A stretch of DNA of 64,000 bases, taken from assembly GCA_964234715.1 (NCBI GenBank), contig OZ174282.1; one strand, 5' to 3'. A program made the translations under genes and the position numbers. Shown piece after piece: positions 1 to 24,629 of the stretch (its first letter is position 1; the number at the start of each line of letters is the position of its first letter). Origin of the DNA: Podarcis melisellensis. Taxonomy: Eukaryota. Under the pieces are notes generated by a model, which was not told the origin of the DNA, made no database searches, and saw only the letters and a list, made by a program, of their open reading frames with translations.

Positions 1-1529
1 CAGGATTTCACCAGGAAGACATGGGACATGAACTGTCTGGAAAAGAAGCTGTATGTCCACCCCAAAACTTTTGCAGGCACAAAGATATTGAAAGCAGGGT
101 CAGGTAGATAAGCACCCCTATACCATCAGCAGCACAAATAACCAGGAATGCATAGAATAAAGGACGTCAGCAGGGGGCTGAAGTGTTCATTCAGAACTCC
201 TATACATAACAAATGGTTGCAGTTGAGGGTTTGGTCCTCCTCCAATAAGCAGTTATCAAATTGTCCAGCTATTATGTTTTTAAAGGACACAAGGCTACCG
301 ATGAAGACTTTGTCAGTATGTGTTTGGCCATAGTGTGTGTGTGCGCATGTGCACACACAATTAAACAATATCTCTGTCATATATGCAATCAACAAATTGG
401 AGTTTTCTTTCCCACTTTTTCTTCTTAGCTCAGTTTTCTGTTTGCCATCTGTTCTGGTCTACCTAGCACTCCAAAGCTTTGGGAAGAGTAGGAACACCCT
501 GCTGGCCCCTCTCACCCTGCAACCTTATGAATCAGGCAACAGCCACTTGCTGCAGTAAGGGACAAGATTCTCCAAGAGAGGGAGATGGGAAGACTGGCCC
601 ATGGGTCCTCTCATTCGCAGTCCAATCCGTGGGGCCAGCACACACACAGATCCATCTACAGGCTGCCCTTTTTTCTGCCTAAGGGCATGTAGCAGAGAAA
701 AAGCCAGTGGTTCTATTCAACTGGGGCAGAGATTCCTGCACCAGGTTAAGTGCTGGGAAAGGGGAAGCTGCCTTTGTTGCCAAACTCAGGAAAGAGGAAG
801 AGGAGGAGGGGTAAGGTGGAGTGGAGGACAGAGAGCAAAAAAAAAGGGGGGGAGAAAGGGTGGAAATTGAGAGCTCTAAGGAGAGCGAGTCCTGTCCGGT
901 GAGGAAAGAGCAGGGTTTCCAGCTTTTCCATTGGTCATCGGAGCTGTAATTTGATGTAGAAGTGACTCATCTTCATGATGTGAAAAGGTTAACCTGCTAA
1001 TTTCTATGCCTCCCCCCATGAGTTGACAGGTACCGGAAGAAAGAGAAATGAGGGAGGAGGCTTGCCAAAAGACCTGTAGAACAAGAGAAGGGGGTTCAGA
1101 AATACCCACTGAAACAGGGAAAAGATGTAGAGAGATTCAGAAGAACCTGTGAAAAGAGAGGGAAAAGGAAAACCAGGGAGGTTACTGTAGGTTTGAGGGC
1201 GATTCCAGAATGCTAGTGGGACAGAAAATGATTTCTGCAGTGGGATGGTTGGGAGAAAAGGCAAGGAAACTGAAAGGGGAAAAGCACAGTAACTGATGGG
1301 ACAAGAGAGGAAAAGGGCATGTGCAATGAGCTGAAGAGACAAAGCAGAGTTGTTAGAGAAGCACAGCTTGCTGGATGTGAGAATAAGGCAAGTCTTCCCA
1401 GGCCTACCATCCTGCAGGCACTTCCAGCAACCCACAAACAGAGGAGGTCCTCCTCCTTCTTTTCTCTAGCAATGAGTACTTGGAGGTACTCTGAACATGG
1501 AGCTGCAATCACCAAGAGCTGTAGAGGGG

Positions 1530-1655
1530 GGTGGTAGTATTCATCTAAGCTTGACTCAGAGTAAACCCACTGAAATTAAGAAACACGACTATGGTAAATT
1601 TGATCCATTAATTTCAACAGGTCAATACTGAGTAAACTTTAGTTGAACAGCATCC
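1530..1655. mobile_element. Degenerate palindromic MITE (similar family to 61590-61710)
   Basis: Imperfect inverted arms ACTCAGAGTAAACCCACTGAAATTAA / TTAATTTCAACAGGTCAATACTGAGT. Confidence 0.5.
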
Positions 1656-1729
1656 AGAGAATTCAACTCCAAGACTTTGCTGAATCCACTTTTCAAGCCA
1701 GGAAAAAACCAGCATCTACCACAGCATCC

Positions 1730-2070
1730 CATCTCAGGAATTCCACAAGTGAACTGCATTGTGTAAAGACATACCATCATCTGTTAATCCTTTCATTGGT
1801 GGGCCCCAAGTTCTAATAAGAAAGGGAGAAAAACTCCTCTCTGTTCCATGTTCTGCACATGATGCATAATTCAATGAACTTCTATTAAGCTCTTTCTTTT
1901 CCAATCTAAAAACCATTAAGGGCTTTAATTGCCCCTCATACAGAAGGTGCTCTAACCTCCTGATCACTCAGGTTGCCCTTTTCCTGCTCTACTGCATGCT
2001 TTTGAGAAGGGACAACCAGAAAGGTGCACAACTGCAGCAGTGCCAGAGATGAACATAAAGCCATTAAGCT
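1730..2070 (-). mobile_element. CR1 LINE ORF2 3' fragment
   Basis: Translation MIRRLEHLLYEGQLKPLMVFRLEKK resembles the CR1 C-terminal motif [25 protein letters not shown]. Confidence 0.75.
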
Positions 2071-2812
2071 CCTTGGACACCTCCTTTCCAGGCCCCAGCT
2101 TGGAATTTTCCTTTCCCACCCACCCCAGCTACATACAGAACTGGATTTTGCACTGAACTTTACATCATTCCAGTCCCAATACTTCCTTAGAAAGTCAGTT
2201 TCTAACTACAACTTGCATCAGCCCCATCTAGCTTATTTAGTGCTCAGGGATGATGCAAGCAGTTCTCCGAAAAGATCTGGGGGGTACCACATTGAGGGAG
2301 GGGCTGTTTTAAATGTTTAATCATTCAAGTTTTAATTGTGCTTTCCACCAACTTGTACAATGGGCTAAGGAGCCTGTAATTTCTGGCCTCCTCCATAATA
2401 TATATTTAAAATAAATAAATTAGATTTATTTTGGCTACCCTCTAATAGCCTCTGGTAAATTGAATGATTTAACAAACCCTTACATATTTCTGCTAGAAGA
2501 TCAACAATTTCAAGGGAGGGCTAATAAAGATGGGAGCTGAAAGGCCTACAGTGATGAAGAGAAGAGAAAAGGCCACCAGGGGTGCAAAAAGAAACAGGAA
2601 GTTAACTCAGAAGGCATTAATATATGACACAAAGGTTTTTCTGTGGTTAACACGGTGCTGCAACTTCAGTTAATGTAGAAGTGCCTCTTTCAAAGTGAAT
2701 GGAGTTGGGCATCCTGTCTCTGCCTTAAACAGGCAGACCCACAGCTATCAGCAAGGAAATTCGAGCCCTGGAACCCAGGACTGTGACCCCCTCATCCATC
2801 CCCTACACATAC

Positions 2813-2947
2813 CTGAAATTTGTCCTCAGCTGCAGCCAGTTTCCTGAGGTCAAGCATTTGGTTCTCCAGCTCCTCCACTGTCTGAATCAAGATGGTGTTC
2901 TGGTCACTCAGATCTATGATGTAGGCCTGTAGAAGCCTCACCTCCAT
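2813..2947 (-). CDS. Exon 3 of the coiled-coil gene: MEVRLLQAYIIDLSDQNTILIQTVEELENQMLDLRKLAAAEDKFQ
   Basis: Strong acceptor TTTTTCTCTCTTCTCCATGTGCAG and donor CAG|GTATGT. 135 nt, phase 0 to 0, with clear heptad periodicity. The gene continues beyond the left edge of the window. Confidence 0.8.
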
Positions 2948-4645
2948 CTGCACATGGAGAAGAGAGAAAAAGTAGAGCCTCAGACACCCGACTCAGTGTT
3001 GAGAATTAGGAAACAAGGACAGCAGACTGGGTCTACCCCAGAGGGCATTTTCTGAGAAAGTGGCTTGGCTCAGAAACCAGCTGGCAACAATGACAGACCC
3101 CACCATCAGGACCCAGAACGTGGAGTTGAGTATGGTCCTAGTCTACCTGGAGGGGCGGGGGAGAAACCAAACTTCAGAAAAGGGCCTTCCTATCCAGGTC
3201 TTGTTTGCCTTTGCAGGAAGCAGCTGGAGCTACCTTTTGCAGGAAACAGTTGGGTCTGGCCTTCTGCATACCAGAATCACTTAGTAACCTTAGGAAGCCA
3301 CTGTCTTCAGGCAGCCTATGCAGAACTTTGCAGCCAGAACATCTCTTTCAACTCAAGTGTGTCTTTCTTTTCTGAGAGAAGGATATGTGGGAATGGCAGC
3401 AGGTAGGCGGGAGGAAAAGGCAATAAATGGAGAGAGGGTTCTGGCTGCTCTTTCCAAAACCTCTCAATCTTAAACCATCAGGGGTGTCATCTCACAGAAC
3501 CAATAGTCTTCGACAGTACAGGGACTTAATCACAACATTGAGGTTTTCGGCCACAGAAAGGCCGGAAATGACCCAGCACCAAGCCACAAATGTCCCAAAC
3601 TCATGTCTCCATTCCCAGGATGTCCCTCTTAGCTCTGGCCCTGGCCAACTCCCTGCTGGAGAACAGCAGAAGGGACCAAATCCATGTTGCCATGAGACAA
3701 AGCCAGGGCCAGCTCACCTGGTGGGTTTGCAAGTTCACTTGTGCCACCATTTGCCAAGATAGGCAGCCACCTCTCCCTTCTAGCTGCTGGGAGCAGGAAA
3801 AGGAGGGCAACAAAACTGTGCCTCCCAGTAGCTACCAAAAATGAAGGAGTTCACCCAGAAGTCTTCACTGGTAAAGTTTTGGCACACGGAAACCTGTTCC
3901 TAATCAACCAAGCTACTCCTTTGGGGTCAAATAAAGTGATTAGCTTATTAAGTAGCAAGCTTTTAATAAGCAAACGTGACTGAAAATTCTCCTCCACATC
4001 CTGATAATTTCAGTGTTTCTAATTCATTATTAGAGCCTAGATTCATTAACTATTCAGTTTATAGATATTAATGCTTAAGATGCATGCATCACCTGCCAAA
4101 ACCTGAAGAGAAATTGTTTCAATTAGCCTTCATGGATCGTGAATCCTACCAGCTGGGTATTTTTAGACAGAAGAGACAAACACATTCCTAAGCAGTGCTA
4201 ATGTACAGATAGGATATGTGTAGAAGGTCACTTGAGCAAAGCTATAGTGCGTGAGCAAGGAAAGTTACACCTTCAAAAAAATGAGGAATACTGATGCAGT
4301 TGATGCCATACGAGTTCAGGTGCATAAGCAAACATGTGATTTGGAAGACAGGCTAAAGTACAATGGAAAACAGCCTCCACAGAATCATTTATTGTCTAGC
4401 CACAACTCTCCCTCACTGTCTTCACCTTTCCTGCCAGCCAAATATTTGTGGTGTTAGAAGCCATAGCTACTTGTCTCATCACAGACAGAAATGGCAGGAA
4501 GAAGATGCGACCCTGCTTCTATACTCCATTTTGTAGAGCCCCCTTGACAGTTGCCCACCTCCCCAAGGGTACTCCTTCGTGTCTCTTACTGATAAATATA
4601 AATACATAATTGACACCCCACACATTCAGCATCAATGTATGTTCC

Positions 4646-5135
4646 CATAAGAGAAGCCCTGCTGGATCAGGTAAAAGGCCCATCTGGTCTAGCATCTTGT
4701 TCTCCCAGGGCCCAACCAGATGGCCCAATGGGAACTCCAAAAGCAGGACCTCTGCCCACTTGCGATTCCCAGCATACTGCCTCTGGCACTGAAGGTAATT
4801 AATACACAGCCATCATGGCTAGTAGGATAAGTACTGGATAAGTCCTCCAGGAGGTTGTCTAATTCAAGTTGGTGGCAATCATCACTACATCCTGTATCAA
4901 GGAATTCCATCATTTAAACTATGTGCTGTGTGAAAAAGTAGTTCCTTTTGTCTGTCCTGAATTTCCCAACATTCAGTTTCACTGAATGGCCTTTGCTGAA
5001 AGTGAAATCCATCTTTTTCACTTTATCCAATATATAATTCAATATACCTCCTTCATATCTTCCCTTAACTCAAGCTTTTTTTCCAAACTAAAAAGGCTCC
5101 AACATTGCCACCTTTTTATCCAAACCTTCAATCAG
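4646..5135 (-). mobile_element. CR1 LINE 3' end fragment
   Basis: Squamate CR1-type 3' UTR terminus (CATAAGAGAAGCCCTGCTGGATCAGG on plus) plus degraded ORF2 tail. Confidence 0.7.
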
Positions 5136-6129
5136 TGCTACTGACGGCCCATGACAGAAACACAATATTACATGTGTGTTTTTTAATCTGCAAGGGAGTG
5201 CTGAAGCACCTGAGCACCATGAGCTGGCATTGGGGAGAATCTGGCCTATGGGGAAATCTATGCAAAGCCTCTGCCACAGGTTAGGCATGACTGGAGAATC
5301 CTGAACTTTGCCACATCTTTCAACAGTTCCAAACTCTGAGAAAAAGATGCAGCTCCTCACTTGTATTGGCAGTTTCTTATTCTTGCCTGCCAGTCCTATT
5401 GGAATGAAGCAGGTTCTTTGTTGTTATTTGAACTTCGTGGGAGAAAAATCACTCGGTCATTAGACATCTCCAACTATGGTCAAAACACAGCAGGCCAGAA
5501 GTAGCAACAGATTTATTATTACCGCAGTACAGGAAAAACATTTTTTGTCTGTTACATGATCCAGTTAATTACCCATGCAATGCAAAGCTACTCTTGGCTT
5601 CAGCAGAAACTCCACATATGCCCCCAGGGATGTTAAAAGGAGGTGTTTTTAGGGGGTGGGGAGGAAAACCTCAGGCTCGGAGGACTAAGACTCACAAGAG
5701 TCCCTTGAGTATTGCAAACTTTGGGGCTAACTTCCATGGCTTCAGGTTCCCTATGACAATACTCATGTCAAAATCTCTGGAAAGAGATGCAAAGTGTCCC
5801 CAGATACTTTGGATGTGGGAGGGTGGGAAGAGAAAGGCCTCCCCCTCTCCCATACAGAATCCAGAGCTGCAGAGTTAGGACAGACTGTTAAAGGAAACTG
5901 TCTGGGAACAAGAGTGCCAGAATTGCAGTAAGCACACCAGAGGTAATGGAGAGGGCTGTTCTTCCTGGACTTGTGCTGCTTCCCCAAAAGAATTGAGGGA
6001 GGGAGAGATCCTTCTGGCATGCAAATGAAAGTCATGAACAAGCTGGATATGGAACCTTGAACTCCAAGAAACTGAAGGGGAATCCCTAGGAATTCCCAGG
6101 CTTTAGTACTCATATGTAAGTCGTAAAGA

Positions 6130-6310
6130 ACAGGGATGCTTCAAACTCTATAATTTATTATGTGACATAGTAGACTTGGACTGGACGGGCCCAAATTCAA
6201 ATCCTGGCTCTTCTACTGCCTAACCTACAGTACAAAGTTGTTGTAAGAGGGGGAACCATTTAAGTAACCTGGAGCTCCTTGGAGGAAAGGTGGAATAGAA
6301 ATATTAAAAA
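6130..6310 (+). mobile_element. Old MIR/CORE-like SINE remnant
   Basis: B-box-like AATTCAAATCC, core CCTAACCTAC...GTTGTTGTAAG and an A-rich tail. Confidence 0.4.
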
Positions 6311-8029
6311 TAATTAACTACCAGTAATTAATTACAGTGCAAATGTGAAATGCAGCCTAGACTGTCATCAGCACAGACAAGTCCAAGCCAGGCTACTGGG
6401 CGGTCAACAAGGGGTGGAGCAAAAGACTTTGCACTCTGTAGATCTGAGCATCCACCTCTGCACTCCACCCCACAAACTAAAATGGCACAGCCATGATTCT
6501 ACATAAAGACACTGCAATCGCTCCACTTGCTCCGGAAGGGAAAGAGGGGGCGGGGCAGAAAGGGCTCCATGCAGAGGATGATGAGGACAGGGCAAAGAGG
6601 GAGGGACTCCTTGGTGGTGACACCGCTGTCCTATAAGGCAGCTCACTCTACACCAACTTCAATGTCATTTTGGCACCAGATGGAAATCTATTTGCTTCCG
6701 TAGATCTTTTAACAAATCATTGTGGCTATTTTACATTGCTTTTATCAGATGCCCTTTGATTTTATGGTTTTGGTGTTTATGTATTTGTTTTTATTTTTAT
6801 TTGAAAGATATCCTGGAAATATTATACTGAAGAGCAGCCCATACCTTCTAAAAATGAAACAAATAAATAAACCCACAAATGAGAGGGGGAGGGATCTGTG
6901 GCAGCCAATCTAGAAGGAAGCTGAACTGGAAAATCTGCAGGGCCCCCTCTCCCCAGCACCCATCAGTGACCAAAACCAGACTCAAAGGGATGCAGATAGT
7001 TCCAGTGTTTTGCATACTGGGGGCTGAGCAAGAGTCCACAGAGCACCAGCTTCTGAAATCTACTTGTGAAGCAAGATATTGGCACCACATGTAAGAGAGA
7101 TAAAACTAAGTATGCTGGATCCTGTTAGCCCAGCTACTGGATGAGCTGCTGCAAAATTCCAGCTACAGAGGCAGATTAATACAAAAACAGGAGAAGAACA
7201 GCACAGTTTTCACTAAGGAAGCCAAAGATGAATTCAGTGAGGAGGAGAAAAGGACATGAGAGGGAGAGTCTGTGTATTGTGAGCAAGGGAGTGGGGAGGG
7301 AGAGGGAACCGAGGCTGATGTGCTGCTGAGAAAGAGGGCCAAAAAAGAAGAGGGTCAGAGGGAGACACCAGAACCATCAGCATTAAAGAGTAGCAACATC
7401 CAGAGCCAGAACTTCAAAACCTCCTCTCTCAAGAACCAAAAGCAGCATTGCCCACCAAACATCTGCAGCTTGTTAAAACTACGAGGGACTGCGACAGCCA
7501 CTTGCCAAGAGCGTCAGAAGAGTACGGCTTATTGCAGTTTCTCTAACTAGGGCACAGAGATCTTCCTGACAGCCTTTGGAGCTATGGGCAGCTGTGCAAG
7601 CAGAATGTGGGACAACACACTAATACTATTCTAGCCTTCCTTTTCAGAAACCAGAGGTTTCACTCTGTGTGTGTAAAAGAGACAACAACTTCTTGGCAAC
7701 GGAAGTAATGTGCTGGCAGTACAGAGCTCTATGCCTGGCTAACACACCTCCAGCTTGATCGTCAGTCCAACTGCAGCTGAGTCTCTGAGCCTGACTGATC
7801 TCATTAATCCAAGTAATCTTCTACGGAAAGATCAAATCAGCCTGGAATGCCCATCAGTGGCCAAACAATGGAGCTCTTCAGAAATTTCAAAGCCACAGGA
7901 GCATAAGAAGAACCCTTCTGAATTTAAGAAAAAAGGCCCTGCACCTTGAATTGAGCTCAGTAATTAACTGAGAGCTAGTGGGACTGTCTTAACGTTTTTT
8001 GGGGGGAGAGAGAGAGAGAGAGAGAGAAT

Positions 8030-8260
8030 GAATGTTGTCACCCAGCCCAGGTCAGCAGTTGTGTTCTGAAGTAGCCACAGTTTCCAAATTGTCTCCAAAG
8101 ACAGCCTCAACAATAACGCATTACAATAATACTGTTTTGAGATTTCCAGAGCCTGGATGACTGGAGGGAACGGTGCAAAGGGGCTGTAGGAGGCCACAAA
8201 CCAAAGCTTGTGAAAAGTACTCAGAGCTACTGAGAATAGCTGTGCTTCCCGAGTCAAAGC
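8030..8260 (-). mobile_element. Degraded L2 LINE fragment
   Basis: Minus-strand translation YYCNALLLRLSLETIWKLWLLQNTTA resembles L2 DYCNALYxGLPLKxxRKLQLxQNAAA. Confidence 0.6.
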
Positions 8261-8859
8261 TGGATATGCAAGTTCTAACTGCACTCCTGATATTTATCAG
8301 ACACACAGATCAGGCAAGAACAGGCTGAATATCACATCCTTGGGCAGGCAAACCACCCACAAACAGTATCTCCATCTTGTTGGGATTGTATCACTAGGTT
8401 TTTTATTGTTTGTTTTCTTGTGGTTATAGTAAATGTTTGATAGAAAGCCCAAGGGTGAGAGACCTGTGGCCTCTCTCTGCAGATGTTATTGGACTCCAGT
8501 TCCCCATCAGCCCCAGTCAACATGACCAATGGTGTGCTCTGCCACTGAGCTCCAGCCTTCCCTCATCACCCTTGTTACTTTCCACCAAATAATAGAGGCT
8601 GAATTTTGCCCCAATGCAGACAAAAAGAAGGTTCAAAAGAGACCCAACCAGTATTCTGGATCTCTATATTCCTTGTCTGCTGCCCCCACTGGACAGGTTT
8701 TAGTCGTATGTCCAAAGCCTGCAAAACAAGTTTGAAAATAAATTGACAGAACAAAAGGAATATACATGTATGCGCCACAGGAAGCAACACCCCTCAGTCA
8801 AACAGTTTGTACAGTAATATCAGCAAACTATTTTTTCTGAGTCATTCCATCCAGCTCAA

Positions 8860-8997
8860 TATTTTCTCTAGTGACCAGCAGCAGCTTCCCAGAGGTTCTC
8901 AGCTTCCCAGTCCTTCCTGGAGATGCTGCTGGGGACGGAACCTGGAATCTTCAGCGTGCACAGCTTTGTGTCTCCGCCATCGAGTTACAGCCCTCTT
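8860..8997 (-). mobile_element. tRNA-derived SINE (same family as 56150-56300 and 61055-61250)
   Basis: Minus-strand head GAGGGCTGTAACTCGATGGCGGAG...CCAGGTTCCGTCCCCAGCAGCATCTCCAGG with A/B-box remnants. Confidence 0.55.
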
Positions 8998-9018
8998 GTA
9001 GCTACAGCATGCAACATT

Positions 9019-9272
9019 AGAAGAAGAAGAAGAAGAGTTTGGATTTGATATCCCGCCTTTCACTCCCTTTAAGGAGTCTCAAAGCGGCTAACATTCTCCT
9101 TTCCCTTCCTCCCCCACAACAAACACTCTGTGAGGTGAGTGGGGCTGAGAGACTTCACAGAAGTGTGACTGGCCCAAGGTCACCCAGCAGCTGCATGTGG
9201 AGGAGCGGAGACGCGAACCCAGTTCCCCAGATTAGGAGACTACCGCTCTTAACCACTACACCACACTGGCTC
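9019..9272 (-). mobile_element. Young full-length tRNA-derived SINE (Squam3-like) with (CTT)n tail
   Basis: Minus strand starts GAGCCAGTGTGGTGTAGTGGTTAAGAGCGG (A box), has GGTTCGCGTCTCC (B box) and ends in (CTT)n. CpGs are retained. Confidence 0.85.
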
Positions 9273-10949
9273 ATTAGTAAACAATCCACCAAGATCAGAC
9301 TTGGTTGGAAGGAGGAGGACAAAAACAATATTTGCCAATAAACATGTCTCTACAGAAAACAGGTTACACAAGCCAGACCTTGGTGGGCCTTCCACGTTCT
9401 AGCGATTCCAAGATAAACTGGTTGAGAAATTTCTACATAAAAACTGTAATTCAAGAAATGAAAAGCTTTCACGGCATCCAGTACATTTCAATCCTGCTGC
9501 TCACCAAAATAATTTGTGAATATCCATTGTCTTCTGCTCCACAACAGTTTATCTTTATAGACTAACTTTGCAGAGTTAGAAGTATTAGTTGGAAGTAGTA
9601 TTATATGCTTAGACTTAGAAAGGCAGGGGGTGGGCAGTACATTGACACCGCAGATAAGAATCCTACAATGTGTGGACACTGAAGACAGGGCTATCATCAA
9701 TAGGCTATTTAACAAAATCCTCTACAAATTTTCAAATTTAAAAAAGAAAAGAAATATATGTTCACACAAAGCTGCCAGAATGTCTTTATGTTCTCCAAAA
9801 CAGCAATAGCAAACCCTCCCAAGGAATCTCTTTTCCCAACCAAGTATTCACACAGAGAAACACCTGCCAAGGCAGGAGAAGCCAGTTTAGAGAAAGGTGG
9901 GGTGGTGGAAGAGGAAATCTTTCAGCTCTTTCCTAACAGAGATCCCAAAACTAGCTAAGAAAAAAAATAGACTTCTGTGGAGCTTTGCAGGAAATAATCA
10001 AAGCTGCCTCAGTAGCGACATCTTTGTGCACACACTTTTTATTTGCAACAATTCCCACAAAGAAAGACCAACTGTGGGGAATCTCTGGCCCTCCTGGTGG
10101 TGGGGCACTCATTAAGCGCAGCAGCAGTTCTCGTTTTGCCTCCTAGGCCTTTTCTGCCCCAAGTCACACTCATCCACTTATGACATTAGCTGTGGAACTA
10201 TTGGGAAACTTAAAGTGCACTCCTGGTTGTTTCTTGGCAAGTGGGGCTTGTCACTGGGCTTTTAAAATTTGGTGGTAAATACAAGCACCGCTGACAGGGC
10301 ATTTCACAAATGGGGAACCACCACTGAAAATACTCTGTCATGGGTCAACCCCTAACAGACAAACTAAACAATAAGACCAGACAAGAGAAGGAGGCTTTGC
10401 AAGGCCAGGTGGTTAGGTGGCAAGGACAGGCTTAGAGTTCCACTCCCTACTCTTGTGCATCCCTTTTGCTGTTAAAATCAGGATGTATCCCACTAACAAA
10501 ACAAAGGCCGGCCTCTGTTCTGAACGTGATGCGTTTTCCCCCCTGTAAGGCCTAAACACAACAGCTGCAAAGCAGTCCAAAGGATGAGTCCCTCAAACCA
10601 ACACAGCACTCCTAAGTGCACCTGCACAGAGGACAACATAATGAAAAAAAGGAGCTGCTGGCATCTGGCTGGGGGTAGGGGATCAACAGGAAACAAAGGG
10701 ATGACAAAAGACATTCTGTGCGCTAGCTCACTCCAGAACTCAGAAGCTTCAGATGAACCAATGCCAGTTCAGAGCAGAAGCCCAGATTTCCCAGGGCTTG
10801 TGTTGTGTTTTCCAAGCTTTAGGCTCCTGTGGCTGTTACTCAGCTGGATCCAGGCTGTCCCTGCCATGACACAAGTCCCCACCATTCAGTCACTCAACAG
10901 GTTGCTTGTTAGGCAGGATCAGTTATACAGTGAAGGTCAATTGCCACAG

Positions 10950-10952
<3 letters not shown>

Positions 10953-11006
<54 letters not shown>
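10953..11006. repeat. (CT)n microsatellite
   Basis: About 27 perfect CT units. Confidence 0.97.
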
Positions 11007-11008
<2 letters not shown>

Positions 11009-14000
11009 AGTATGTTCCTTCGCATACACTCTGGGCTGGAGTCTCAACAGGCATCTATACAAAATCCTTGGATTGACACAGCACTGCCAGGATAGTTATT
11101 GCAATGACTCAGTTGTGAAGGGGTTTGACAAACACATTTGAGAGGCCAACTGGAATCATGACCCCTTCAACAGGTAAAGCTTTTACCTGCAAAGACAAGG
11201 ATCAAACTACCGGTACATGTGACATCTACAATTAAGCAGCAGGAGGATGTGATGGAGAGGTGCTTGAGTCCACGCACCTTAGCAAATGCACTCTTGATCA
11301 GTTTCCAGGCCCAAAGGTGGAAAAGAGGGCTGGTGGAGTAACTGTCCAAAAGTAAAAAAATAAAACTAAGTATGTGCTTTTTCTTTTTTTAAAGTAGCAA
11401 ATTTTGATTTTGTAGGATATGTGCCTAAGGAGTTTCCCCCTCTGCCTCTGCAATAATTGAGCCCAAAAGCCCTTCTTCTTTCCAATCACAAAGAGCAGCT
11501 TTGCACCCCGGCTACACCAAGGAGCACTTCAGAGCAACCTCACACCAAAACGGCTGATTTCTCAGGGATGCTGCAAAGGTATTCAATAAAAAGCTTTTAA
11601 ATGCATATTTTTAAACTTGCAACAGGAAAGCTTTCCTGTGTCAAGACAGTAATTCTTATAACAGCATTGATCAAAATGTCATTCTTTTATGAGTGTACAA
11701 TACCTTTTAATGGCATACAACCAGCCATTAGGGTTATACCCCTCCATACAGCAGAGGCATCTTCCTGGAAAAAGGGAGCCCCCGGCCAAGGCACGGGCAA
11801 GCCAAGCACAGCCCTTTTTCATCATTGCAGCAGCTCCCCAAATGGTCTTCCTGAAGACACAATATTCAAGGCACACGTGTAGCAGGGACTGGCTTTTGCT
11901 CCCCATTCTCAGGAACACACCCTGCTCTAAAGTGGCAATGTTTTGACTCTCACTGGGGGTAGTTCCACTTTCATGCAGCCTCCCTCCCTATCTTTCATCT
12001 GACAACCACTACCCCCCTCTACATTTTCTCATCCGATCTGGCAGAGGATGAAATGCCTCCTGTTTTGTTCTAGGCTTTTAGTTTCCAAAGATAGAAACTA
12101 AGTGTCTAATGAACTGCTTCTATTCCACAGCTCATTTGAAGCCCTCCAGTGCTCTGGCTCTTCAGAGATTTTTTTTTAAGAACGGTATTGGAGATTGCAT
12201 TTACTCTGCTTGAATGAAGGGTGAGTAGGAACCCTGGACAAGAGCGCACCAGCACTCTAATTCTCTCATCCAGCTAAAAATACCAGCGGGGGAGGGAACG
12301 GGCAGTCTCCCCATCTCCAAGACCTTTCACGTATGCTATTTGTAGAATTCAATACAGGCTGATGGCTGTCATGCAGGCACAGAGCAAAACCTCTCAATAT
12401 TTTTGCACCCCAAGACCACCAAAGCCAACACAAATAATATGCCCCTCATACAAGGCCACCTTATTTTTCAGAAATGGGCTAGTTAGTTTCTACACTGGTC
12501 ATTATTTGCCAGGAATATTCCCTATCTGAACAAAAGAAAGCAGAAGGATAAGGTTTCTACTTTACACAGAAAGAGTGATGAAGAGGGTTCGAGGTACATG
12601 CAGATGTCAATGGTCACCCAGCCAGAGACTCTAGGATCCCTCACCTTCCAGCACCCTGCTCAGGAGCCACTTGGGAGTCTGGATGCTCAGCGAGATCGTA
12701 AGAACTCATGAGCACAAACAAACTGCAATGGGACCCAAGCCTTTCCTTAAAACACAGCAACATGAAGTCACAAAACCTCATATGCAAGGGGGATAAATGA
12801 GAGAAACTATGACCATGTCCAAGGAGCGTCCTTCTCTTTACAGGCTAGTATAATCACACAGCCAGCACTACAATATTTGCCAGAGATACCCACACTACCC
12901 AGTTTTCAGCACTAACTACAACTGCATCCAATGCCAGAAGAAGATTGGGCCCACTGCCACATAAATATCACCTAAATTTTGCTTTGGTCAGCAGGACCAC
13001 ACTGGCATAAACATGACAGAGACATTGACCCTTTCTCGACTCTCCTTTGCTGAGCAAGTCCATAATGGCAGGCAGCTGTTTGCAGCTGTATTGGTGGGGT
13101 GAAGGCAGCACTTGAGTCAACTCACCATGTGATTATCACTCCTACTAGTGGCAGAGGAAGCACATGAGCCATGCAGAATACAAAAATCCCATATTTGCAG
13201 AATGGAGGCTTCACCAGGAGGTGGAATGAGGCTGAGAGCAGAACTGGCTGTCAGTTCCAGGATCTTTTGCTCTTCTTATGTAGTTAATAGTTGTTATTAA
13301 TACCAATATGTGTTGTCTAAAATGATGATGGAGTATTAACAATCCTATCCTTAGTTGTATTTTTTTCTCCATTGTTTATGAAAGTGTTGTAACTTTGCCT
13401 ATTCTCATTCTTAATAACTCCTAGCAATATTAAAGCTGCACTCTTTTGAGGCTTGCATTATACTATATTCTACTTCTTACGTTGTGCATATCACTTTATA
13501 AGACTTTGACTAAATGTGCTACAACATTCAGAGAATCCTAATCGTGAAGGTGAATGAATTGTTTAAATTGAAATTTGTTATGTAAAGCTTAATATTTTTT
13601 TTTTAAGTGCTACAACATTAACCCAGCTTTTCTTTGCCTCCACCCTGTTCTGCTTGGCATCCAGCCTGAAGAAGTGTTCTAGAGACCTGGAAACTTGCAC
13701 GTTATTTTGTGACATTTTGGCTGCTCAAATAAAATTTTACTTATGGACCAAATATAGCTACCTTTATTATCTCTTTCCATTTCCCACTTTCTAATATGTA
13801 AAAAGTGCCAAAAATGGCATCTGGGTAATTATGTGTGCCAAGCTAGACAACTCAGAAAGAAGTCTGAGCTCTTGTGGAAAGTTCCAGCTGCCCTGTCAGC
13901 ACTCAGTGGCAGAACTTCTGAAAGAAGTGGATCAAGGGGCCTGGCTATAGGGTTGCTCATGGCTTGGGGAAAATTATTATCAATTATTATTATGCTTGCT

Positions 14001-14639
14001 GCACTCAGATACCATTTGTCAGCCAATGTGCTGCTGTGCATCTCCACCACGCAGAGTAGCCTGTCAGAAACAGTCCACAAAGGCAGAAGTACCTGAGCAG
14101 AGCTGCATCCATTATCTGGAACAGTCAGTTCTAGACTTTGTCCTCCTTCAAAAACAAGACTCCTTGGGGAGCTTGATTCAGTCATCCAGATACAGCCCCT
14201 TTACTTTCCAGCAACACAGCACATGATCAGCATAATAACCCACCTGTGCCCTCAACCCTAACTCTGGGTAGGTTTCCAAGGGGCCTTAGACCTGATCCCC
14301 AGGGACACCTGGTGAGCCTGTAGGCCTCATTTTTCCTCCATGAAATAGAGCAGCTGTGAAAAACATTGCAAGAAAATGCCAGGCCCACGTGGATTTCCCA
14401 GTCTGCTTCCACAGGTGAACAACCACAATCTAATTTTGGATGCAAACAGAAAGAAGATAGCCAAGAGGCTAAGCGGCTTGATCACCCAAGAACTCAATGG
14501 TGCCAACATGTCTGGCAGCTGATGCCCCAGATACACCTTGCAAACTTGATAAAGCTGTGGGATAAATAGCAAACAGTAACAACCACTGAAGAAACCAGCC
14601 ACTAGTTTTGCAGGCATACCAGTCACGGGGGTATGTGTG

Positions 14640-14978
14640 CAGTGCTGTATTTATGTGTAAGCTAAACAAGCTATAGCTTAGGACCCCAGTCTCTTGGGGC
14701 CCACCAAAAAATTTAAAGGAAAAAAAACCTGGATGTACATTTCCAAAATATATGATAAAAAAACAAATAAAGCCTACATACAGCAATAGTGTTTTGTGTT
14801 TTGTAGGCTCCTATGATGTAAGAAATGGGCCACGCTTGCTAGCCTGCTCCCTAAAAGATCACTGGTTTGCTCATTTCTAACAGCAACAATTTGTTGTTGA
14901 CAAAGGACAGCTGGACATAGAAAGGGCCCCATTACCTTCAGTAGCTTAGGGCCTCATCAAACCTAAATCCGCCCACTA
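14640..14978. mobile_element. Non-autonomous DNA transposon (hAT-like MITE) bordering the CpG island
   Basis: Imperfect terminal inverted repeats CAGTGCTGTATTTA...TAAATCCGCCCACT and internal repeated TAGCTTAGG(A/G)CC motif near both ends. Confidence 0.55.
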
Positions 14979-15110
14979 AGTGTCGGGCGGCCACTCCCTT
15001 TGGGCAGTGGAGGGCGAGCCAGCAGTACCCTAGCAGGAGGGGACAGGATGTTGCTGGGGGACACCTCCTAGTACAAAGGGAGACCTAATTAAGGGAAAGA
15101 GGGGAGATAC

Positions 15111-15241
15111 CTTGCGAGCGCCTTCCGGATTCTCCTCCAGCTGGATTCCCACGCAGTGCAGGCGCTCTTGGTAGAGGGTGCGGAGCTCTCCAAAGAGACG
15201 CTTCAGGGCACGAGAGGCCGGAGGGCGGCCCAGGCATTCTG
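15111..15241 (-). CDS. Exon 2 of the coiled-coil gene: (A)ECLGRPPASRALKRLFGELRTLYQERLHCVGIQLEENPEGARK
   Basis: Branch-like CTGAT, acceptor CCTTTCTCCCCAG(CAG) and donor AAG|GTATCT. Open frame with helical character, phase 1 to 0. Confidence 0.72.
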
Positions 15242-15439
15242 CTGGGGAGAAAGGCGGCCATCAGAACCGGGAGACGGGGAGATCCGAGGGTGGGGGCGCC
15301 TCCTCCTCCTCCTCCAGACCCCGCCCTTGTTCCCCGGTGGACACGAGGCGGGGGATGGGAGGGGTCCGCGAGGGATGCCTTTGGGGGAGGGGCTTTCTCG
15401 GAGGGGCAAGGGGCGCGTTCCCTGCTACGGCCTCCTCAC

Positions 15440-15476
15440 CGCAGGCCTCTTCGCGCTCCGGCGCCTCCATCTCCAT
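15440..15476 (-). CDS. Exon 1 CDS of a coiled-coil protein gene (PMFBP1-like candidate): MEMEAPEREEAC+G
   Basis: ATG in strong context (GAGATGG) inside the CpG island. Donor CG|GTGAGG, phase 1, compatible with exon 2. Confidence 0.6.
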
Positions 15477-16919
15477 CTCCTGCTTCAAACGGGGCCGCCG
15501 CTAGTCCTTCTCCCCGCCCACTAAGTGATGGGCACGCCACTCGGCCAACGGCGATGGAGTGCCGGATCTGGGCCCGCCTTCTCCCCCGTCAGAACCCAAT
15601 CACCGCTGCCTGGGGCGGAGAGCCGCGCAACGGACCTTTCCGAGCTGGAGTCGCTCTACCTTGCTGGCACCTGGAAGGCCGAAAGCGGCTTAGGCGATTG
15701 GCTTTTGGTTCTCCCTTCGGCCAATAAGGAACGAGGTATTGCAGGCAAGCTCGGCAGACGGGAGAGCGGACGCCGGTCACCATGGCGACCGCGCGGTAGA
15801 GACACTGCGAGGGGGCGACACGCCCTCTTGTCTTTCAGGCCAGGGGAGGCAGGCCGGTGTGGCAACCCGGCCTTCCTCCCCGCCCCAAGCCAAGGCCCAG
15901 CCCTGCCCTTTGCGAAGCGCCGGTACCTTCGGGCAGTCGCCCGTGAATGCGGACTCCAGCCCCGCGGAGGGCACACACAGGCACCGGGCCTTTCTGGGGG
16001 TCTTCAGGTTCCGCTGCTCGAGCGCCTGTTGGGCTCGTACGGTGAAGCTGCCGCCAGGCGGGCAGGATGATCCGGCCGCGAATGTTGTGTGGAAGTAGAC
16101 TGCCATTGGCCATGGAGGCTCCATTGAGATGCCAAGCCTAACAGCGAGGTTGGAACTCCGCCTCGTCTTTTCATGTGGGTGGGTGTCCCGCCCCAGTGTA
16201 GGCAGCGGGGTGTGGGTTTTGCGGAGGGCGGCGCTTCCTCCTATTCATCCTAAGTCCACCCGCAGTCAAATTTATTTAATCACAACCCCCCTCCTGCAAC
16301 AGTCCAAATATGAGAGAAGAAGGAAAACGTGGGCCCACTTTCCTTCTCTGCACTGGTGCCTCTTGCTCAGCAGTCTCAGTGTCCCCAGAGTGGCCAAGCT
16401 GTTGCTTCTGGGAAACCGCAAAGCAGCCGGACATCTCCTTGGCAGTCATGGATGCAAATGCTGATGGCAATAAGAGAGGATAAGACTAAGGTGCTACTGG
16501 ACAATTTTTTAAAAATAAATAAATTATTTATTTATTTCAATTGCATCAGACCAACACAGCTACCTCCCTGAACCATGGAAGAGGATGAGGCTAGCCACTA
16601 GCATTGAGGAGAACCAGGTTCTTCCTCTACAAATTGAGGCAGTTTGCTTTTCACAGGGATTACCAAGTGGTGGAGATAATATTGCATTCAGACCTTGCCC
16701 TTCAGAGGCACCACCTCTGATCCTAGAGGTCCTAGACACAGCTATCATGACTATAAGCACCAGCAGCAATATGACCAGCTGCTACCAACCCCAGCAAGCA
16801 CGACCAATGAACAGGTATGATGGGATTTGTAGTCTGAGAAGTTTAGTCAGCCCTATTGATAGCAGGTTAAATCTCTATAGCTAGCAGGAGAGAGCTGGCT
16901 TAGTGCTCTTGGACAATGT

Positions 16920-17060
16920 AGAGCAGGTGTGGGGGAGAACTCTGGCCCTCCAGATGTTGCTGAATTACAACTCACATCATCCCTAGACATTGGCCATGCT
17001 TGCTGGGGCTGAAAGAAATTGTAGTTTAGTAGCATCCAAAGGTTCCCAAAGCCTAGTGTA
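16920..17060. mobile_element. Palindromic hAT-like MITE (related copies ~8450-8530, ~16780-16860, 61763-61873)
   Basis: Shares GGCCCTCCAGATGTT...ACTACAA.TCCCATCA...GTTGTAGT core with the 61763 copy. Confidence 0.6.
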
Positions 17061-20000
17061 GAAGCAGGTTGAGTAGCACTGAACCCATTCACTTCAGCTG
17101 AAGGAGCAGCACATGCAGGAACCCATTTTGTATGTGCAGCTCTACATCCCATAATAGGCAAACTCTCTACATTAAATTTGCTACCCATTGCTTACTGCCA
17201 TGCTGATAGTCTAGGTCCTGGGCCCTCCTGACAACAATGCCAAGTCTTCCCTGCCAAGCTGCCTTCTGCTTTACCTTCCTCACCTTCAGCTGTATTGTGC
17301 CACAGAACATGTGATGCTGTGCTTGGAGGGCACAAGAGTTGGCATGTGGCCTGAAGGAACCGGAGTTGTGTATGCTCTTCAGTGCAGTGCAACGAGCTCG
17401 CCTGGAATCTCACCAAGCCAAGGAAGACCAAATGCTGTTAAGTGAGTGGGGCTGGGTAGAAATCAAATCCTCTGCATGTGGCTGGTTCAGAGGATGAGAA
17501 ACAGGAAAATCTTTTTTCAGAGCAGAAGCTCAGACAGTGACTGACTCTTCTGGAACAGAGGAGAGAGAAAGGACACAAAAGAGACTGAGGGGAAGCTTGG
17601 ACAGCAACTGTTCTCAGTTAATCCAGAGCCCCCCAGTAAATAAAATTGTAGGCAGTTAATAAATTACAGAAATAGGGGAAAGAAGCATTTTAGGAGGCAG
17701 CTTAGTTCATCTGGAGGGTACCTGGCGAGCTCCTATTGTATGTTGGGGCGGAGGGAGGGAGGAAAGAGGGCTCTAAATTGCCTTTCAGCTCTTTTAAATT
17801 ATTTCTGCAGATCTTATTACAGGAGAGAAGCGGCTGCAGAACAACCCGGAATTCCAGCAGCCAACTGCCCACCAGACCTGTTATGAAAAAGTAGAAAGTG
17901 CATATATAGCCCACAAGCCTGGTGGAGGCAATAAAAGATGCCTTCGACTTCCATTCATCACTTTGTCATCTTCAGCTACATTCAGATAGTGGTTAGCAGA
18001 GCTCACAACATGGGCAAATTAACACATACGAGTCCCTTGCTGGCTTCCTCCTCTCATAGCTTCCCACAGGAGATATATATTCCATTTCCATGGCTCCTGC
18101 CTCCTCTCCTCTTTGGGCCCCATCCCAGATGGAAAGAAAAAAGAACTCTTAGGGTATGAAATGGGATGGGGGTGAAGAAAGGAGAGTGTGTCACAGGCAG
18201 CAGCAGTAGCAGCACAGCCAAGGGGCTGTACAGTTGCTATGAATTATTGTGGCAATGTGACACAGCTTTCCCCCTCCATCATACTGAAGCATGGTTGCTT
18301 CTGGTACTGAGGGGCTGAGAAGTTAAGAGATCTGCCCTAAAAGATTTGGCAGTGCAAAGAAGACAGCTTTGCCCTCAAACCCTGCTGCTCATAAGATGCC
18401 TGGAGGCACCTAGGTGGCCGTTGCTATCAGAACAGGGTAATGGGCTAGGTGGACCTTTTGTCTGATCCCATACAACTGCTCTTACATTCTTATACCCAGA
18501 GTATCTGTTGTGGAAGTTGCAGAGGGTGCAATGGAAACGTAACAGCTGTCCTACCCTGCCTGCAGCATCAGCTCTGGTGCGCCACTGCTCCCAAGAGCCC
18601 TTTTCTGTTCCTTCAGGGAAGAGGACCAACCTGGATCTTCTACTCTGTCCCTGAGCTCCAGCCCTCAGCCTCTTGCCTGGCCTTGAATAGCTGTCTGTCA
18701 GTGGCAATGCTGAGAAACTCAAAGCCAGTCTCCAAGAAATCCATGCCCCAGGTCTCTAGGGGCACAGCTGAGTTCCTGGAGATCACACAAATCATCTGGG
18801 ATCTCATCTCTTAAACTTTAAATCCACTGCCATAAGATATAAATAGCTTGGGCACAAGCCAATGTAATCTACCCTTCCACTGTGCAGTGTGTATATACAT
18901 GGACACTAAAAATAAACTACAACACAGAAACTGATCCTGCTGGATTAAGACAAATTTGGATTTTAATGCCCAGCTTTGCTCAGAGTCCTAGAGTTCAAGG
19001 GTCGATATAGTAGATTGCAAGAAGGGTATAGGTTAGTCAAGCCTCAACATTTTATCATAATAAACCAGATGTGGACAAAACACCAAGTTGAAGCCCATAA
19101 ATCTATTACAGTGAACTGTCAATGTCCCCCATGGCAGGGTCATTTGTTAATTCATAGCTGGGTCTCTTTTTTCAACAGACCTTGTAAACTCTTTCCTGAA
19201 ACATCAATAAACCATCTGCTTTGACTAGTTAATCAAATGACTTTATTCAGTCCAAAGCCATTTTTTCCTAATAAAAACAGAGTATTTATCTCCACGGCTA
19301 TAAAAGAGGATTGTTTTCAACTATTCACTTATAGTTAAGAAGCGCATTTAGTCTGGATTGATTTCCAATGCCTTGGTCATATCCTGTCACTTTCCATTTC
19401 TTACACACAACATCTCAGTTTAGCTACTTAGCAGCAAAAAAAACACATCCTAACTTGGGGCTGGGCACCAGTTCAGGGAGGCAGAAAAGTTCCCATCAGG
19501 ATTAAGAGCAGCATTCTCTGACAAGCAGTAGAAGGACAGGTGTCTCCTGCGCCTGTACGTCTTTCACATCTGGCATTCTGTTGCAGAGGACCCAACTCCT
19601 TTCCTGGGACTGGCTTTCTAAGGAAGGATATGTGCCCCAGAACTGCTCTGTAACTACAAATTCAATTGCAAAACAACCAAACTGCTCCCAGTTGCACTGA
19701 AGCAACCACGCGCTTTTAGGGATCATAACAAGTACATTAACTGCCCTTGTCTGTCTAGCAGAGCTCTGCCTTTGACAGTGCCAGGAAAACAGAGTCTTGG
19801 AGCCTTATGCCATTGGAGGCACCTGGTACAATCCTGAGTTCAGCTGCCGTACTCACTGTGAGGCCAATTCCTGGCCTCTCAACCCAACCAACTTGTCAGG
19901 GGTAAGTCTTAAAAAAAAAAAAGGCGGGTGGGCATTCACACAGGAAATACATACAAGAATCCGGTGCCCCAGTTCTGTCCTATCTGCCCCAGTGGGGAGC

Positions 20001-21305
20001 AGAGGGTGAGGAAGGCAAAGTCATTTATATAATGTGCCTCTCTGCTGTGTTTCTAATGGCCAGAGCTTTTGTTCTGCTGTTGCTGGCTGCCCATGACAGG
20101 CAGGAAGCCACAACCTCCCTTTATGCCATTGCCTTATTCAGCAATTTACATCCAGCATAAAAATCAAATATGCATGTTGCTATCGCCTCACCAACAGCAG
20201 TTTCAATTTTTGCCTTGCTGTATTCTAAATGGGGGGGGGGGCACAGATGGGCAGAGTCACTTTGCTAGACCTGAAACTTGAATTTCTGTCTGCTTTATTG
20301 CTAAGCGGTTGGATGGGAATGGCTGAATACAGCTTCCTAAGAAGGGAGTGCACAGAGAAGGCCTCTTGGGAGGAGGGACAGCAGCATCCACAGGGGGCAG
20401 ACTCCTTGGCTTCGACTGGACATAAGAGGGTCCATTGATGGGTCTTCTGGCAGCCTGGCTCTTGGAGCTCTTGAAGAGAAGGGGCAAGCTTTCTTGAGGG
20501 AATTTATTAAGGGAATTTCTGTCCAGGACAGCTAGCACCCCAAGACAGGACAGCCCAACAATGCTCACAGAGCTTCCCTCCTGGATTCCATGGAGTCACT
20601 GGACACACAGGGAGTTTCAGCCATCAGATCACTGCCAATTCTGAACAAAGTGAGAAAGCATTTCCAAGGCGAGATGGGCAGTGACTCAAGCTGACTCCAT
20701 GAAAAGACCCAGGAGCATCCACTCAGCTCTTATCCCTGCTCCATGTACACACCAAGCCCTTGCCCCGGGCACCTTTGACTGGCTCTCATCAAGGTGCTCC
20801 CTCCGGAGAGTCTGTCTAGAACTTCATCACCATTTTCATTTGGGGCAGCTCTTGAAGGCACAAGTGAAGCATCATTCAAGAATTTAGATTCCAATGGATT
20901 TTGGTCGTTTAAAAAGAGCAGCAATGCTGGAGCTATGCAGACAGTCATGCTCCCCTGAGCCCTAAGGTGGTGGGGAGGAGGCGAGAGGCTGCATCCAGAA
21001 ACTGAAGCCCAACAAGCCGCAGGGCAGAAGCCAGAACCAAATCAAGCTTCATTTCTCTTGCTTGTTCAGCTGGCAAAGGCAAACTGCATTGCCCAGGATA
21101 TCTTCTCTTCTTTTGCTTGAAGGCTAAGAGCCTTTCCCTTGGAAGCTAAGCAAGGAACACAGCTGGCTCCACCGCTGGGCATCCCAGGCCCCATCACAGC
21201 AGTAGCAGAGCTTTGGTCATCTCTGCTCCTTTGAGACTCAGCAGAAAGGAATGGAGGACTCCAGTCTCCATGATGACAGAATAAACTCCACAGGTTATTA
21301 CAAAT

Positions 21306-21425
21306 CATGGGCATAGCCGGGGGGGGGGGGCAGGGAGGGGCAGCTGCCCCCCAAGCAATAAAAAACAATAAAAATACATAGCAGAGGTTCTGCCACTCCT
21401 AACAAAAATCCTGGTCATGCCCATG
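21306..21425. mobile_element. hAT-type MITE with 8-bp target-site duplication
   Basis: TIRs CATGGGCATAGCCGGG / CCTGGTCATGCCCATG. Flanks TTACAAAT (21298-21305) and TTGCAAAT (21426-21433) are 7/8 identical. Confidence 0.75.
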
Positions 21426-23669
21426 TTGCAAATGACAAGAAATACAAGTAAAACAAAAAGCAACCCCCAGCACTGTAGGCAATGCTTATTTTGAGAATTC
21501 CCTGCTACAGTGTGCGCATGTGTGTGTGCACACGTGTGTGCACTCTTAAGTCAAACAACTCCTTTTGTTCCCCTCTGCTCTTTACCCTGTGCTGAGAAGG
21601 AAGTTGCCAGGACTTCCTAATGGTTATTGTAGGGTGCAATATCTTTCTCCAGCCTCCGCACACCCCTTATCTTCTTCCAGCTGCTTTAGTGCCCCATTGC
21701 TGGGCTTGCTTTCATAGGCAGGGATGAAGGCTTCCTCATGTTGTCTACAGCTCTGTCACATTCAGCACTCGATCCACTGCACTGCATACAACCAGTTTCA
21801 AACCTGCTGGTGTGGACAGCCTGAGGAAGGTGCCTCAGCCTTGGTGCCTGCCCATAAAAGCAAGCCTAGAGAGAGAGGCGAGGATGATGTCAGCAGGTCC
21901 CAGAAACCTTCTTTGTTGTGAGATATTGGGGGGGATTTGAGAGTTTGTTTGGGGCCTGGGTAGATGGGTGGAGTCCTGGGTAAAAGCCAGGGGGCTGAGA
22001 GGTGCTGAGTGAGGAAGTGTGTCAGAAGAAGGAATTTATATCAGTATTTATTTGTAATTTGCATTAATGGTTTTATTATATATTTTTGTAACTTTTTTTG
22101 TTTGTTTTAGTTTGCTATATATTACTTAAGAAATATTTATATATACATTGGCTGGCATAGAAATAGTCTAAATAAATAAATGTAGACTATGTGTTGAAAG
22201 CTGAACAGCCTCTTGATATCCTTCCCCTTCCATCACTCAAGCAGAGGTTGCTCCATGGTAGGAGGAAAAGGAGTTTTCCACATGCACAGAGGATACTCTC
22301 CAGTTGCCGGTAACCATGATAATGGAATAGAGCCACTGTCTGTGCTCCTGCACTATTATACTACTAACAGTCCGTATTTCAGAAGTAGGCAACATACTAG
22401 GGCCAGATGTTGGAAAGAAAAGTCAGGTTTTTGATGATGCAGGAATATTAGTGCTGCAGAAGTGTCTGGAATTGCCATTGTTCAAAGTATCCACTCCTTG
22501 CAAAGCCTCTAAACATTCTATGGATAGCACCTGAAGCCAAAATCGCATATAGTCAAAACACACTGGCTGCAATGGTGGGTGGGATGCCTGCTCCCTTTAT
22601 TTTTGCTAAGCACATAAAGCTGACTGTGTATAAGCTAAATATATGTTTGTTAAGAGCATATCAGCGAGCAAAAAACAAATTAAGAATTATCCATATTGCT
22701 CGTAATATCGTTCTTGTGGGGGGTGAGATGGTGTGGGGGCTTCAATTAAACCGCTAGAGTCAAACTATGGCCAAGAGTGAAGAGAAACTGAGGGCAGAGA
22801 TCTGCCAGGCTGCAGTTCTCAGCAGTTCATGGCTATATTGGAAATGTTTGCCTTTCGACCATCACCATCCATGCTTCACCATGTCTGGCAAAATAATATC
22901 TCTCTCTCCAATATCAGACCAAGTATTCCAGTAAGAAATGATAGAAGTACCTCTTTTACCCCTCCCCACACAGGTGCCTGGATCAGGGTGAGGGGGCATG
23001 CCATCTTCCCCGAAACAGGAATGAGAGACTGGCTATACTGGCAGGGTCAGCATCTACTTTGCAGGTCCAGGAAAAAGTACAAACTCATTTAGAGACCTAG
23101 TCTCATAATTCCTGTCACATCCATCTGGATCCCATTGATCTTTCCTTGCTCCCCACCCCCCACCCCAATGCTTCAGAGGCTCCTTCCTCTCCTGGCCTGT
23201 CACAAGAGGTGCTGTTAAATCAAAAAGGCAGCTTTAATCTTTCTGCTGTCTGACAAGGAGGGAGCAAAAGCTGGTGTTGGAACAAGAGCCCCTTGGAGTC
23301 ATACAGAGAGCTCCCTGGTGATGCTGCCAGCAGCCCTTCCCTTTCCCGGCTTCATGTGGAAGTTATTCATAAGCATCCTCATCTCTTCTCCATTGGTCTC
23401 ACTGATCAAAGACGGGAAACGGGAAACCCTTCTTGAAAAGTTGACTCTCCACTTCCAGCTCTTAACCTGAGAGGTGGGAGGGAGGGCAGGCACTTTGCCA
23501 GCACCTGTCTATGCATTTAGTAGGGGTTTTAAATTCTTCTGCAGCCCCATTTGAAAACAAAATGAAACCCACAGTTGGAGGCAGCAAAGCTTCTGAATAC
23601 CAGTTGCTGGAAATCACAGGAGAGTGCTCTTGTGCTTGAATCCTGCTTGCTGGTTTCCCACAGGCACTT

Positions 23670-24331
23670 GCTTCGATCACTGCAACCTCTACGTTAGATT
23701 ATTGCAATGTGTTATACATGAGGCTACCTCTGAAGACAGTTCGGAAACTTCAGCTGGTACAGAATTCGGTGGCCAGGTTGCTCAGCAGGGCAAGACAGTT
23801 TGAGCATATCACACTGATCTTGTCCTGACTGCACTGGCTGCCAATCAGTTTCGAGGCCCAATTCAAAGTTCTGTTTTTGACCTATAAAGCCATAAATGGC
23901 TCAGGACCACAATACCTCAAGGACCACCTCTCTCTGTATGAACCCAGCCAGACCCTGAGATCATCCTGTGAGGCCCATCTTTGTGTGCCTCCTCAGGAGA
24001 GGTCTGGAGAGTGGTAACACAAGAATGGGCCTTTTCTGCAGTGGCTCCCCACTTGTGGAATGTTCTCCCAGGGAGGTTCAGCTGGTGCCTTTGTTATACA
24101 GTACACCTTTAGGCACCAGGCGAAAATGTTCCTCATCAACCAGGCCTTTGACTGATTAACATCCTATATCCTTTGAAATATGTTGGTAGAAGGGGGAAAT
24201 TATTGGTTTGTTTTCTTCCTGTTCTTGCTTTTATTATGTATTTTGTGTTTTTTTATATTGTAATTTTATGTTGTAAACTGCCCTGAGATCTACAGATGAA
24301 GAGCAGTATACATATTTTAACAACAACAACA
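23670..24331 (+). mobile_element. L2 LINE 3' fragment with (CAA)n tail, inserted into a CR1 3' end
   Basis: Encodes degraded LDYCNVLY..LPLKTVRKLQLVQN..ARL...LHWLPI. The CR1 3' UTR halves lie at ~23575-23668 and 24332-24406. Confidence 0.75.
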
Positions 24332-24629
24332 ATCTGGTTAGCCACTGGGAGAACAGGATGCTGGACTAGATGAGCCATTAGCCTGATCCAGCCAGCTCTT
24401 CATATGAGATGGGGTGGATCTAGAGAAAGTCTTGGGCATGCAAAGGAAAGAGCCACCAAGCTTTCCTTTCTCCCCCCCCCCATACTTCAACCCACCATTG
24501 TTCTATTCTGCAGTGGACACTGTGAAGATAGCTGGGAATTGGGAAAACAGCTGGGCTCCTCATAAAGGAAGTTTTGGCCCACAGAAGAAATACTTAAGTC
24601 AATCGCTTCATTTAAAATTCCTGCAGCTG

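Follow-up and report, generated by a model that had tools for sequence, protein, structure and literature searches.

In mammals, PMFBP1, also referred to as STAP, is a long coiled-coil scaffold linking sperm head and tail, and more precisely a testis-specific coiled-coil linker of the head-tail coupling apparatus (PMC12539209, PMC8363609). It is encoded by an essential gene in human and mouse, whose loss leads to acephalic sperm, and residues 1-282 and 750-1023 of the mouse protein are required for CENTLEIN binding (PMC12539209, PMC8363609). The mammalian protein is the presumed orthologue of reptile proteins bearing the same name, according to the naming of the latter by NCBI and to the position of the gene between ZFHX3 and DHX38. 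In sea turtles, Emydura, a bamboo shark and a stingray, PMFBP1 opens with a two-part module, made of an LFGE..LYQERLH box followed by LLQ.Y..DLS.QN..L.Q..EELE, which is also present in teleost proteins labelled PMFBP1-, golgin- or CCDC18-like. Here, we describe three exons located downstream of ZFHX3 in a stretch of 64,000 nucleotides of the lizard Podarcis melisellensis (contig OZ174282.1, hereafter the window), whose positions are used as coordinates and on whose minus strand the exons are read. Judging from their sequence, these exons very probably form the 5' end of the PMFBP1 orthologue of this lizard. They are arranged as follows:

15440-15476, minus strand: coding part of exon 1, with the ATG at 15476, 12 codons and one base (G at 15440), phase 1, donor GTGAGG
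15242-15439, minus strand: intron 1, 198 nt, GT...AG
15111-15241, minus strand: exon 2, starting with a CA that completes GCA (Ala), then 43 codons, donor GTATCT; it encodes the LFGE..LYQERLH box
2948-15110, minus strand: intron 2, 12.2 kb
2813-2947, minus strand: exon 3, 45 codons, phase 0/0, donor GTATGT; it encodes a five-heptad leucine zipper with a core Asn
1-2812, minus strand: start of intron 3; exon 4 is not within the window

A direct reading agrees with the initial annotation of this DNA, which had described three exons with canonical GT/AG sites, matching phases and the same translations. Indeed, the exon phases are 1/0/0, and the ATG, the six splice sites and the frames are all intact. 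The start codon has a G at -3 and another at +4, in line with a Kozak context, and an in-frame TAG stands nine codons 5' of it. The acceptor of exon 2 is pyrimidine-rich and ends with ...TTTCTCCCCAG, whereas that of exon 3 ends with ...TCTCCATGTGCAG. The former is a CAGCAG tandem of the NAGNAG type (15238-15243, minus strand), which provides an alternative in-frame start at 15238 at the cost of one alanine; this distal acceptor lies at the position homologous to the single acceptor of Pogona.

The protein searches proposed in the initial annotation were run here with exons 2 and 3 each on its own, and the resemblance to PMFBP1 clearly exceeds what chance would produce. In a HMMER search of 1.84 billion representative proteins, exon 3 by itself had 11 matches at a cut-off of E <= 0.001. 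Those with names are LOC134408889 of Elgaria, annotated as an 'uncharacterized protein' (72% identity, E 6.5e-9), isoform X7 of PMFBP1 from Hemicordylus capensis (E 3.2e-7) and, over residues 55-98, PMFBP1 of Pogona vitticeps (XP_020644032.1, E 1.4e-4). When N-termini of reptile PMFBP1 were compared with the window by tblastn (positions 1-11500 and 11700-30800), they matched exactly exons 2 and 3 and nothing else, exon 2 aligning with residues 9-49 of the Pogona protein (E 3e-6) and with residues 16-42 of that of Emydura (E 6e-4). In the Pogona and turtle proteins, the homologue of exon 2 adjoins the exon 3 match on its N-terminal side. In the same two intervals, tblastn detected no additional PMFBP1-like exon within intron 2. 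No Pfam family matched exon 2 or exon 3 at E <= 10, full-length relatives only gave generic coiled-coil noise below the Pfam cut-offs, and the ESM Atlas search with exon 2 retrieved unnamed short clusters that were uninformative. Intron 2 also harbors a CT/AG dinucleotide microsatellite (about 10980-11040, plus strand), which translates as a SLSLSL... run in an open reading frame (ORF).

The PMFBP1 gene of Pogona (contig L001) is organized as follows:

exon 1: ATG, 11 further codons and 1 base, then GTGAGG
11455-11580: exon 2, donor GTATCA
intron 2: 12.8 kb, compared to 12.2 kb in the window
24358-24492: exon 3
intron 3: 13.2 kb
from about 37662: exon 4

Residues ~9-98 of the Pogona protein (XP_020644032.1, and isoform X1 as well) are homologous to the product of the window exons, with an identity of 50% for exon 2 and 55% for exon 3, and both lizards share exon phases and borders, promoter blocks and the ATG. 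On the contrary, the exon 1 peptides differ, the opening Met-Glu aside, and Pogona presents a single exon 2 acceptor instead of the CAGCAG tandem. The three exons are homologous to annotated reptile PMFBP1 exons 1-3 in sequence, order, phase and intron size, which bears out the proposal that they are 5' exons of a longer PMFBP1-type gene. However, the gene was not hidden, as had been claimed, since the NCBI models of Pogona, Hemicordylus and several turtles already include exons homologous to these; the 5' exons of PMFBP1 are already known from other reptile annotations. Similarly, PMFBP1 of turtles, sharks and rays (Caretta, Emydura, Chiloscyllium, Hemitrygon) is a long coiled-coil protein that opens with an LYQERL(H/R) box and then the zipper (LQSY..DLS.QN..L.Q..EELE), and that has the shared C-terminal region, although the identity over exon 3 decreases to 40-60% and the proteins are longer, with 1,045-1,870 amino acids. 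The closest named match of exon 3 is LOC134408889 of Elgaria multicarinata (XP_062997470.1), with 69-72% identity, in a species where promoter and exon 1 are conserved. This locus nevertheless differs from the window in being annotated as a separate protein of 208 amino acids that begins at exon 3, and in its exon 2 homologue, which has diverged strongly and is followed not by GT but by GC (L002:3046-3545; 10001-30559).

Intron 3 measures about 13 kb in Elgaria and about 13.2 kb in Pogona, which accounts for the absence of exon 4 from the 2.8 kb between exon 3 and the start of the window. In agreement with this, no exon 4 (RPSLA..RPMPAE in relatives) was found by tblastn in positions 1-2812. 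An ab initio search of the same interval yielded a single candidate, which was unconvincing and was not retained, tblastn likewise giving no exon 4. The Pogona gene is 57.5 kb long, and 0.6 kb separates its end from the convergent gene of a DEAH-box helicase (DHX38). By analogy, the P. melisellensis gene would continue past position 1 of the window, where its exon 4 is expected after another 13 kb or so, and would end near DHX38 after a total of about 60-70 kb. The long gene-poor interval that the initial annotation cites for human does not seem to apply here, as the Pogona gene occupies the 57.5 kb from its first exon to DHX38.

Comparison with other squamates indicates that the exons are under purifying selection. 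A closely related animal, of a sister species, is represented by a contig of 1.8 kb (L003) that aligns with the window at 95.7% over 1.4 kb, but differs at only 1 of the 135 positions of exon 3 (0.7%), compared to 60 of 1,269 in the flanks (4.7%), exon 3 being about six times better conserved. With Elgaria, the similarity detectable at the DNA level ends no more than 15 bases from the borders of exon 3. The ratio of nonsynonymous to synonymous substitution rates (dN/dS) across squamates, which had been suggested as a check, amounts to 0.27-0.38 for exon 3 against Elgaria, Pogona and a fourth squamate, and to about 0.5 for exon 2 against Pogona (Nei-Gojobori method).

Conservation extends to the region 5' of the coding sequence, which was delimited by its GC content, its observed/expected CpG ratio (CpG o/e) and its conserved blocks:

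15477-16200, minus strand: putative CpG-island promoter and short 5' untranslated region (UTR) of PMFBP1

The CpG island covers about 15200-16200, thus including exon 1, with a GC content of 0.6-0.7 and a CpG o/e of 0.6-1.0. In an alignment of three lizards, conserved blocks at about 15482-15638 comprise a CCAAT box in inverted orientation (GATTGG), a GC box (GGGCGGGG) and, immediately 5' of the ATG, CGTTTGAAGC, and the window, Pogona and Elgaria have in common the position of the ATG and the phase-1 GTGAG donor. Positions 15638-15482 were also matched by blastn to Elgaria L002:2873-3028. Transcription most likely begins in this CpG island, a promoter that has CCAAT and GC boxes but no TATA box, on the same strand as ZFHX3. 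Four transcriptome-sized runs of a single sample, each amounting to about 100 Mb of contigs and only guessed to be RNA, contain 0.45 of the words sampled from 15111-15520, compared to the share of about 0.40 expected with exons 1 and 2 alone.

Several points weigh against the assignment of the three exons to a PMFBP1 orthologue. Exon 4 and the gene body lie outside the window and the continuity into a long protein rests on the orthologues. Actual splicing in P. melisellensis, as well as expression in testis, is what we infer from sequence rather than from junction reads. Moreover, the PMFBP1 models of some lizards (Anolis, Sceloporus) are devoid of the module, and the Elgaria locus is annotated as two genes, with a divergent exon 2 that lacks a GT donor. 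Exon use can therefore vary among lineages. The absence of the module in Anolis and Sceloporus could be due to lineage loss or to incomplete models, whereas the 5' end in Elgaria reflects either a split annotation or a lineage-specific decay of exon 2. Of the Anolis and Sceloporus models (P0017-P0021), that of Anolis begins with a short peptide similar to no more of exon 3 than its last dozen residues.

The Elgaria annotation could also be read at face value: NCBI predicts an 'uncharacterized protein' of 208 amino acids from exon 3, then a separate gene encoding at least 899 amino acids on the same strand. On this model, the P. melisellensis transcript would end before the PMFBP1 body and encode a small zipper protein of its own, as does LOC134408889. 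However, the tail of the Elgaria model reads past the shared exon with no onward splicing and therefore looks like that of a truncated model, and a single protein of 1,300-1,870 amino acids, which also has the conserved C-terminal region, starts with the module in Pogona, Hemicordylus, several turtles, a shark and a ray; a separate short gene is thus very unlikely. The alternative of a separate gene, which the initial annotation had kept beside that of PMFBP1 exons, is contradicted by the same module being the N-terminus of annotated PMFBP1, sharks included. Even less credible is the hypothesis that the module is unused in P. melisellensis and that PMFBP1 starts downstream, the open frame being a leftover. 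It could draw on Anolis and Sceloporus, whose PMFBP1 models do without the module, and on the fact that exon use in P. melisellensis was read from the genome and not from spliced transcripts. Relic exons are nevertheless hard to reconcile with an intact ATG, six intact splice sites and intact frames, with an exon 3 that in the sister species has diverged about six times less than its flanks, with a dN/dS below 0.4 and with a conserved CpG island and promoter blocks, and the share of words found in the transcriptome-sized runs, although these are only guessed to be RNA, is about that of the exons.

The initial annotation had further suggested that the gene lost its coding capacity in mammals and left a long non-coding RNA (lncRNA) on the same promoter. 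In this broad form the idea fails, because the exons are not separate from PMFBP1 and because PMFBP1 is coding in mammals, where it is essential in both human and mouse (PMC12539209, PMC8363609); the earlier interpretation as a whole is partly supported. A narrower version would have mammals, and perhaps some iguanians, discard an undescribed module without Pfam family together with the corresponding PMFBP1 exons, and the abandoned ancestral promoter, orphaned next to ZFHX3, persist as that of LINC01572, a scenario that we regard as improbable. Mammalian PMFBP1, with about 1,007-1,023 amino acids, is shorter than the reptile and shark proteins, and the human gap between ZFHX3 and PMFBP1 is far larger than 19 kb, both of which speak for it. 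The same is true of the searches: no mammalian protein was among the exon 3 matches at E <= 0.001, and word-indexed searches with the Pogona N-terminus, the Pogona C-terminus and the turtle C-terminus matched proteins of lizards, turtles, catfish, sharks and rays, and none from a mammal or a bird. These negative results are weak, however. Indeed, module-bearing shark proteins and full-length turtle proteins also fell below the HMMER threshold with exon 3, so that the absence of mammals there is uninformative, and the word index limits the reach of the terminus searches. In addition, a lncRNA in a syntenic interval is no evidence of descent. In a literature search, no paper linked LINC01572 and PMFBP1 by such a descent, and queries on LINC01572 with PMFBP1, and on PMFBP1 with CCDC18, found nothing on the evolution of the locus.

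The strong heptad periodicity of exon 3, already noticed in the initial annotation, is due to leucines at residues 6, 13, 20, 27 and 34, the other core position being occupied by V/I/N/V/M. The search of PDB sequences with exon 3 only returned GCN4-type zippers, at E-values of 0.013 and up, which denote a resemblance of type and not homology. As in GCN4-type zippers, five leucines occupy one core position and beta-branched or aliphatic residues the other, with one buried Asn; unlike them, exon 3 is not preceded by a basic DNA-binding region. Membership in the basic leucine zipper (bZIP) family was considered and ruled out because a basic region is missing: the stretch preceding the zipper, at the end of exon 2, is acidic or neutral, and Pfam gave no match. 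The module of exons 2 and 3, i.e., the LYQERLH box and the five-heptad zipper with its buried Asn, is N-terminal and conserved from sharks to lizards, and may form a parallel coiled-coil dimer by which the long rod is nucleated or brought into register. This role in dimerisation is one that we infer.

The N-terminal zipper module of PMFBP1 has no Pfam family; it was kept for more than 400 million years, from sharks to lizards, and it is sometimes split or dropped by annotation pipelines. In mouse, CENTLEIN binding maps partly to residues 1-282, and whether mammals retained the module bears on a human infertility gene. If the gene set of P. melisellensis lacks the 5' end of PMFBP1, the coordinates given here supply it, including the tandem acceptor. 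Beyond annotation, the finding matters little.

An ORF similar to exon 3 (P0008, 58% identical over 33 residues, with AG/GT-looking borders) recurs in metagenome contigs of JGI and ENA (at least 24; L007-L009), and in no organism-labelled source. A eukaryotic contig from an ENA assembly (L005) carries an exon 2-like piece at 7180-7299 and an exon 3-like piece at 10001-10117, 2.7 kb apart and about 7.5 kb downstream of a tubulin gene; these pieces probably belong to a PMFBP1-family gene of a fish or amphibian.

The upstream neighbor of PMFBP1 is recognized by the following feature:

43075-48789 and 34594-36261, minus strand: ORFs of the last two large coding exons of ZFHX3

Three homeodomains of this gene match the PDB entry 'Alpha-fetoprotein enhancer binding protein' (ATBF1/ZFHX3) with E-values of 1e-32 to 1e-38, establishing synteny on the ZFHX3 side. 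The PMFBP1 exons had been described as starting 15 kb downstream of ZFHX3. They do lie downstream and on the same strand, but the distance from the ZFHX3 stop codon (34594) to the PMFBP1 ATG is 19.1 kb; the figure of 15 kb would fit the end of a presumed ZFHX3 3' UTR of about 4 kb. Two runs of N interrupt the window, at 30844-31019 (176 bases), near the expected end of this 3' UTR, and at 53137-53267 (131 bases). Finally, two overlapping ORFs in different frames at 62725-63470 (plus strand) both match Pfam RVT_1 (E 2.5e-12 and 1.7e-17) and are a frameshifted remnant of a reverse transcriptase of the long interspersed nuclear element (LINE) type in an intron of ZFHX3.

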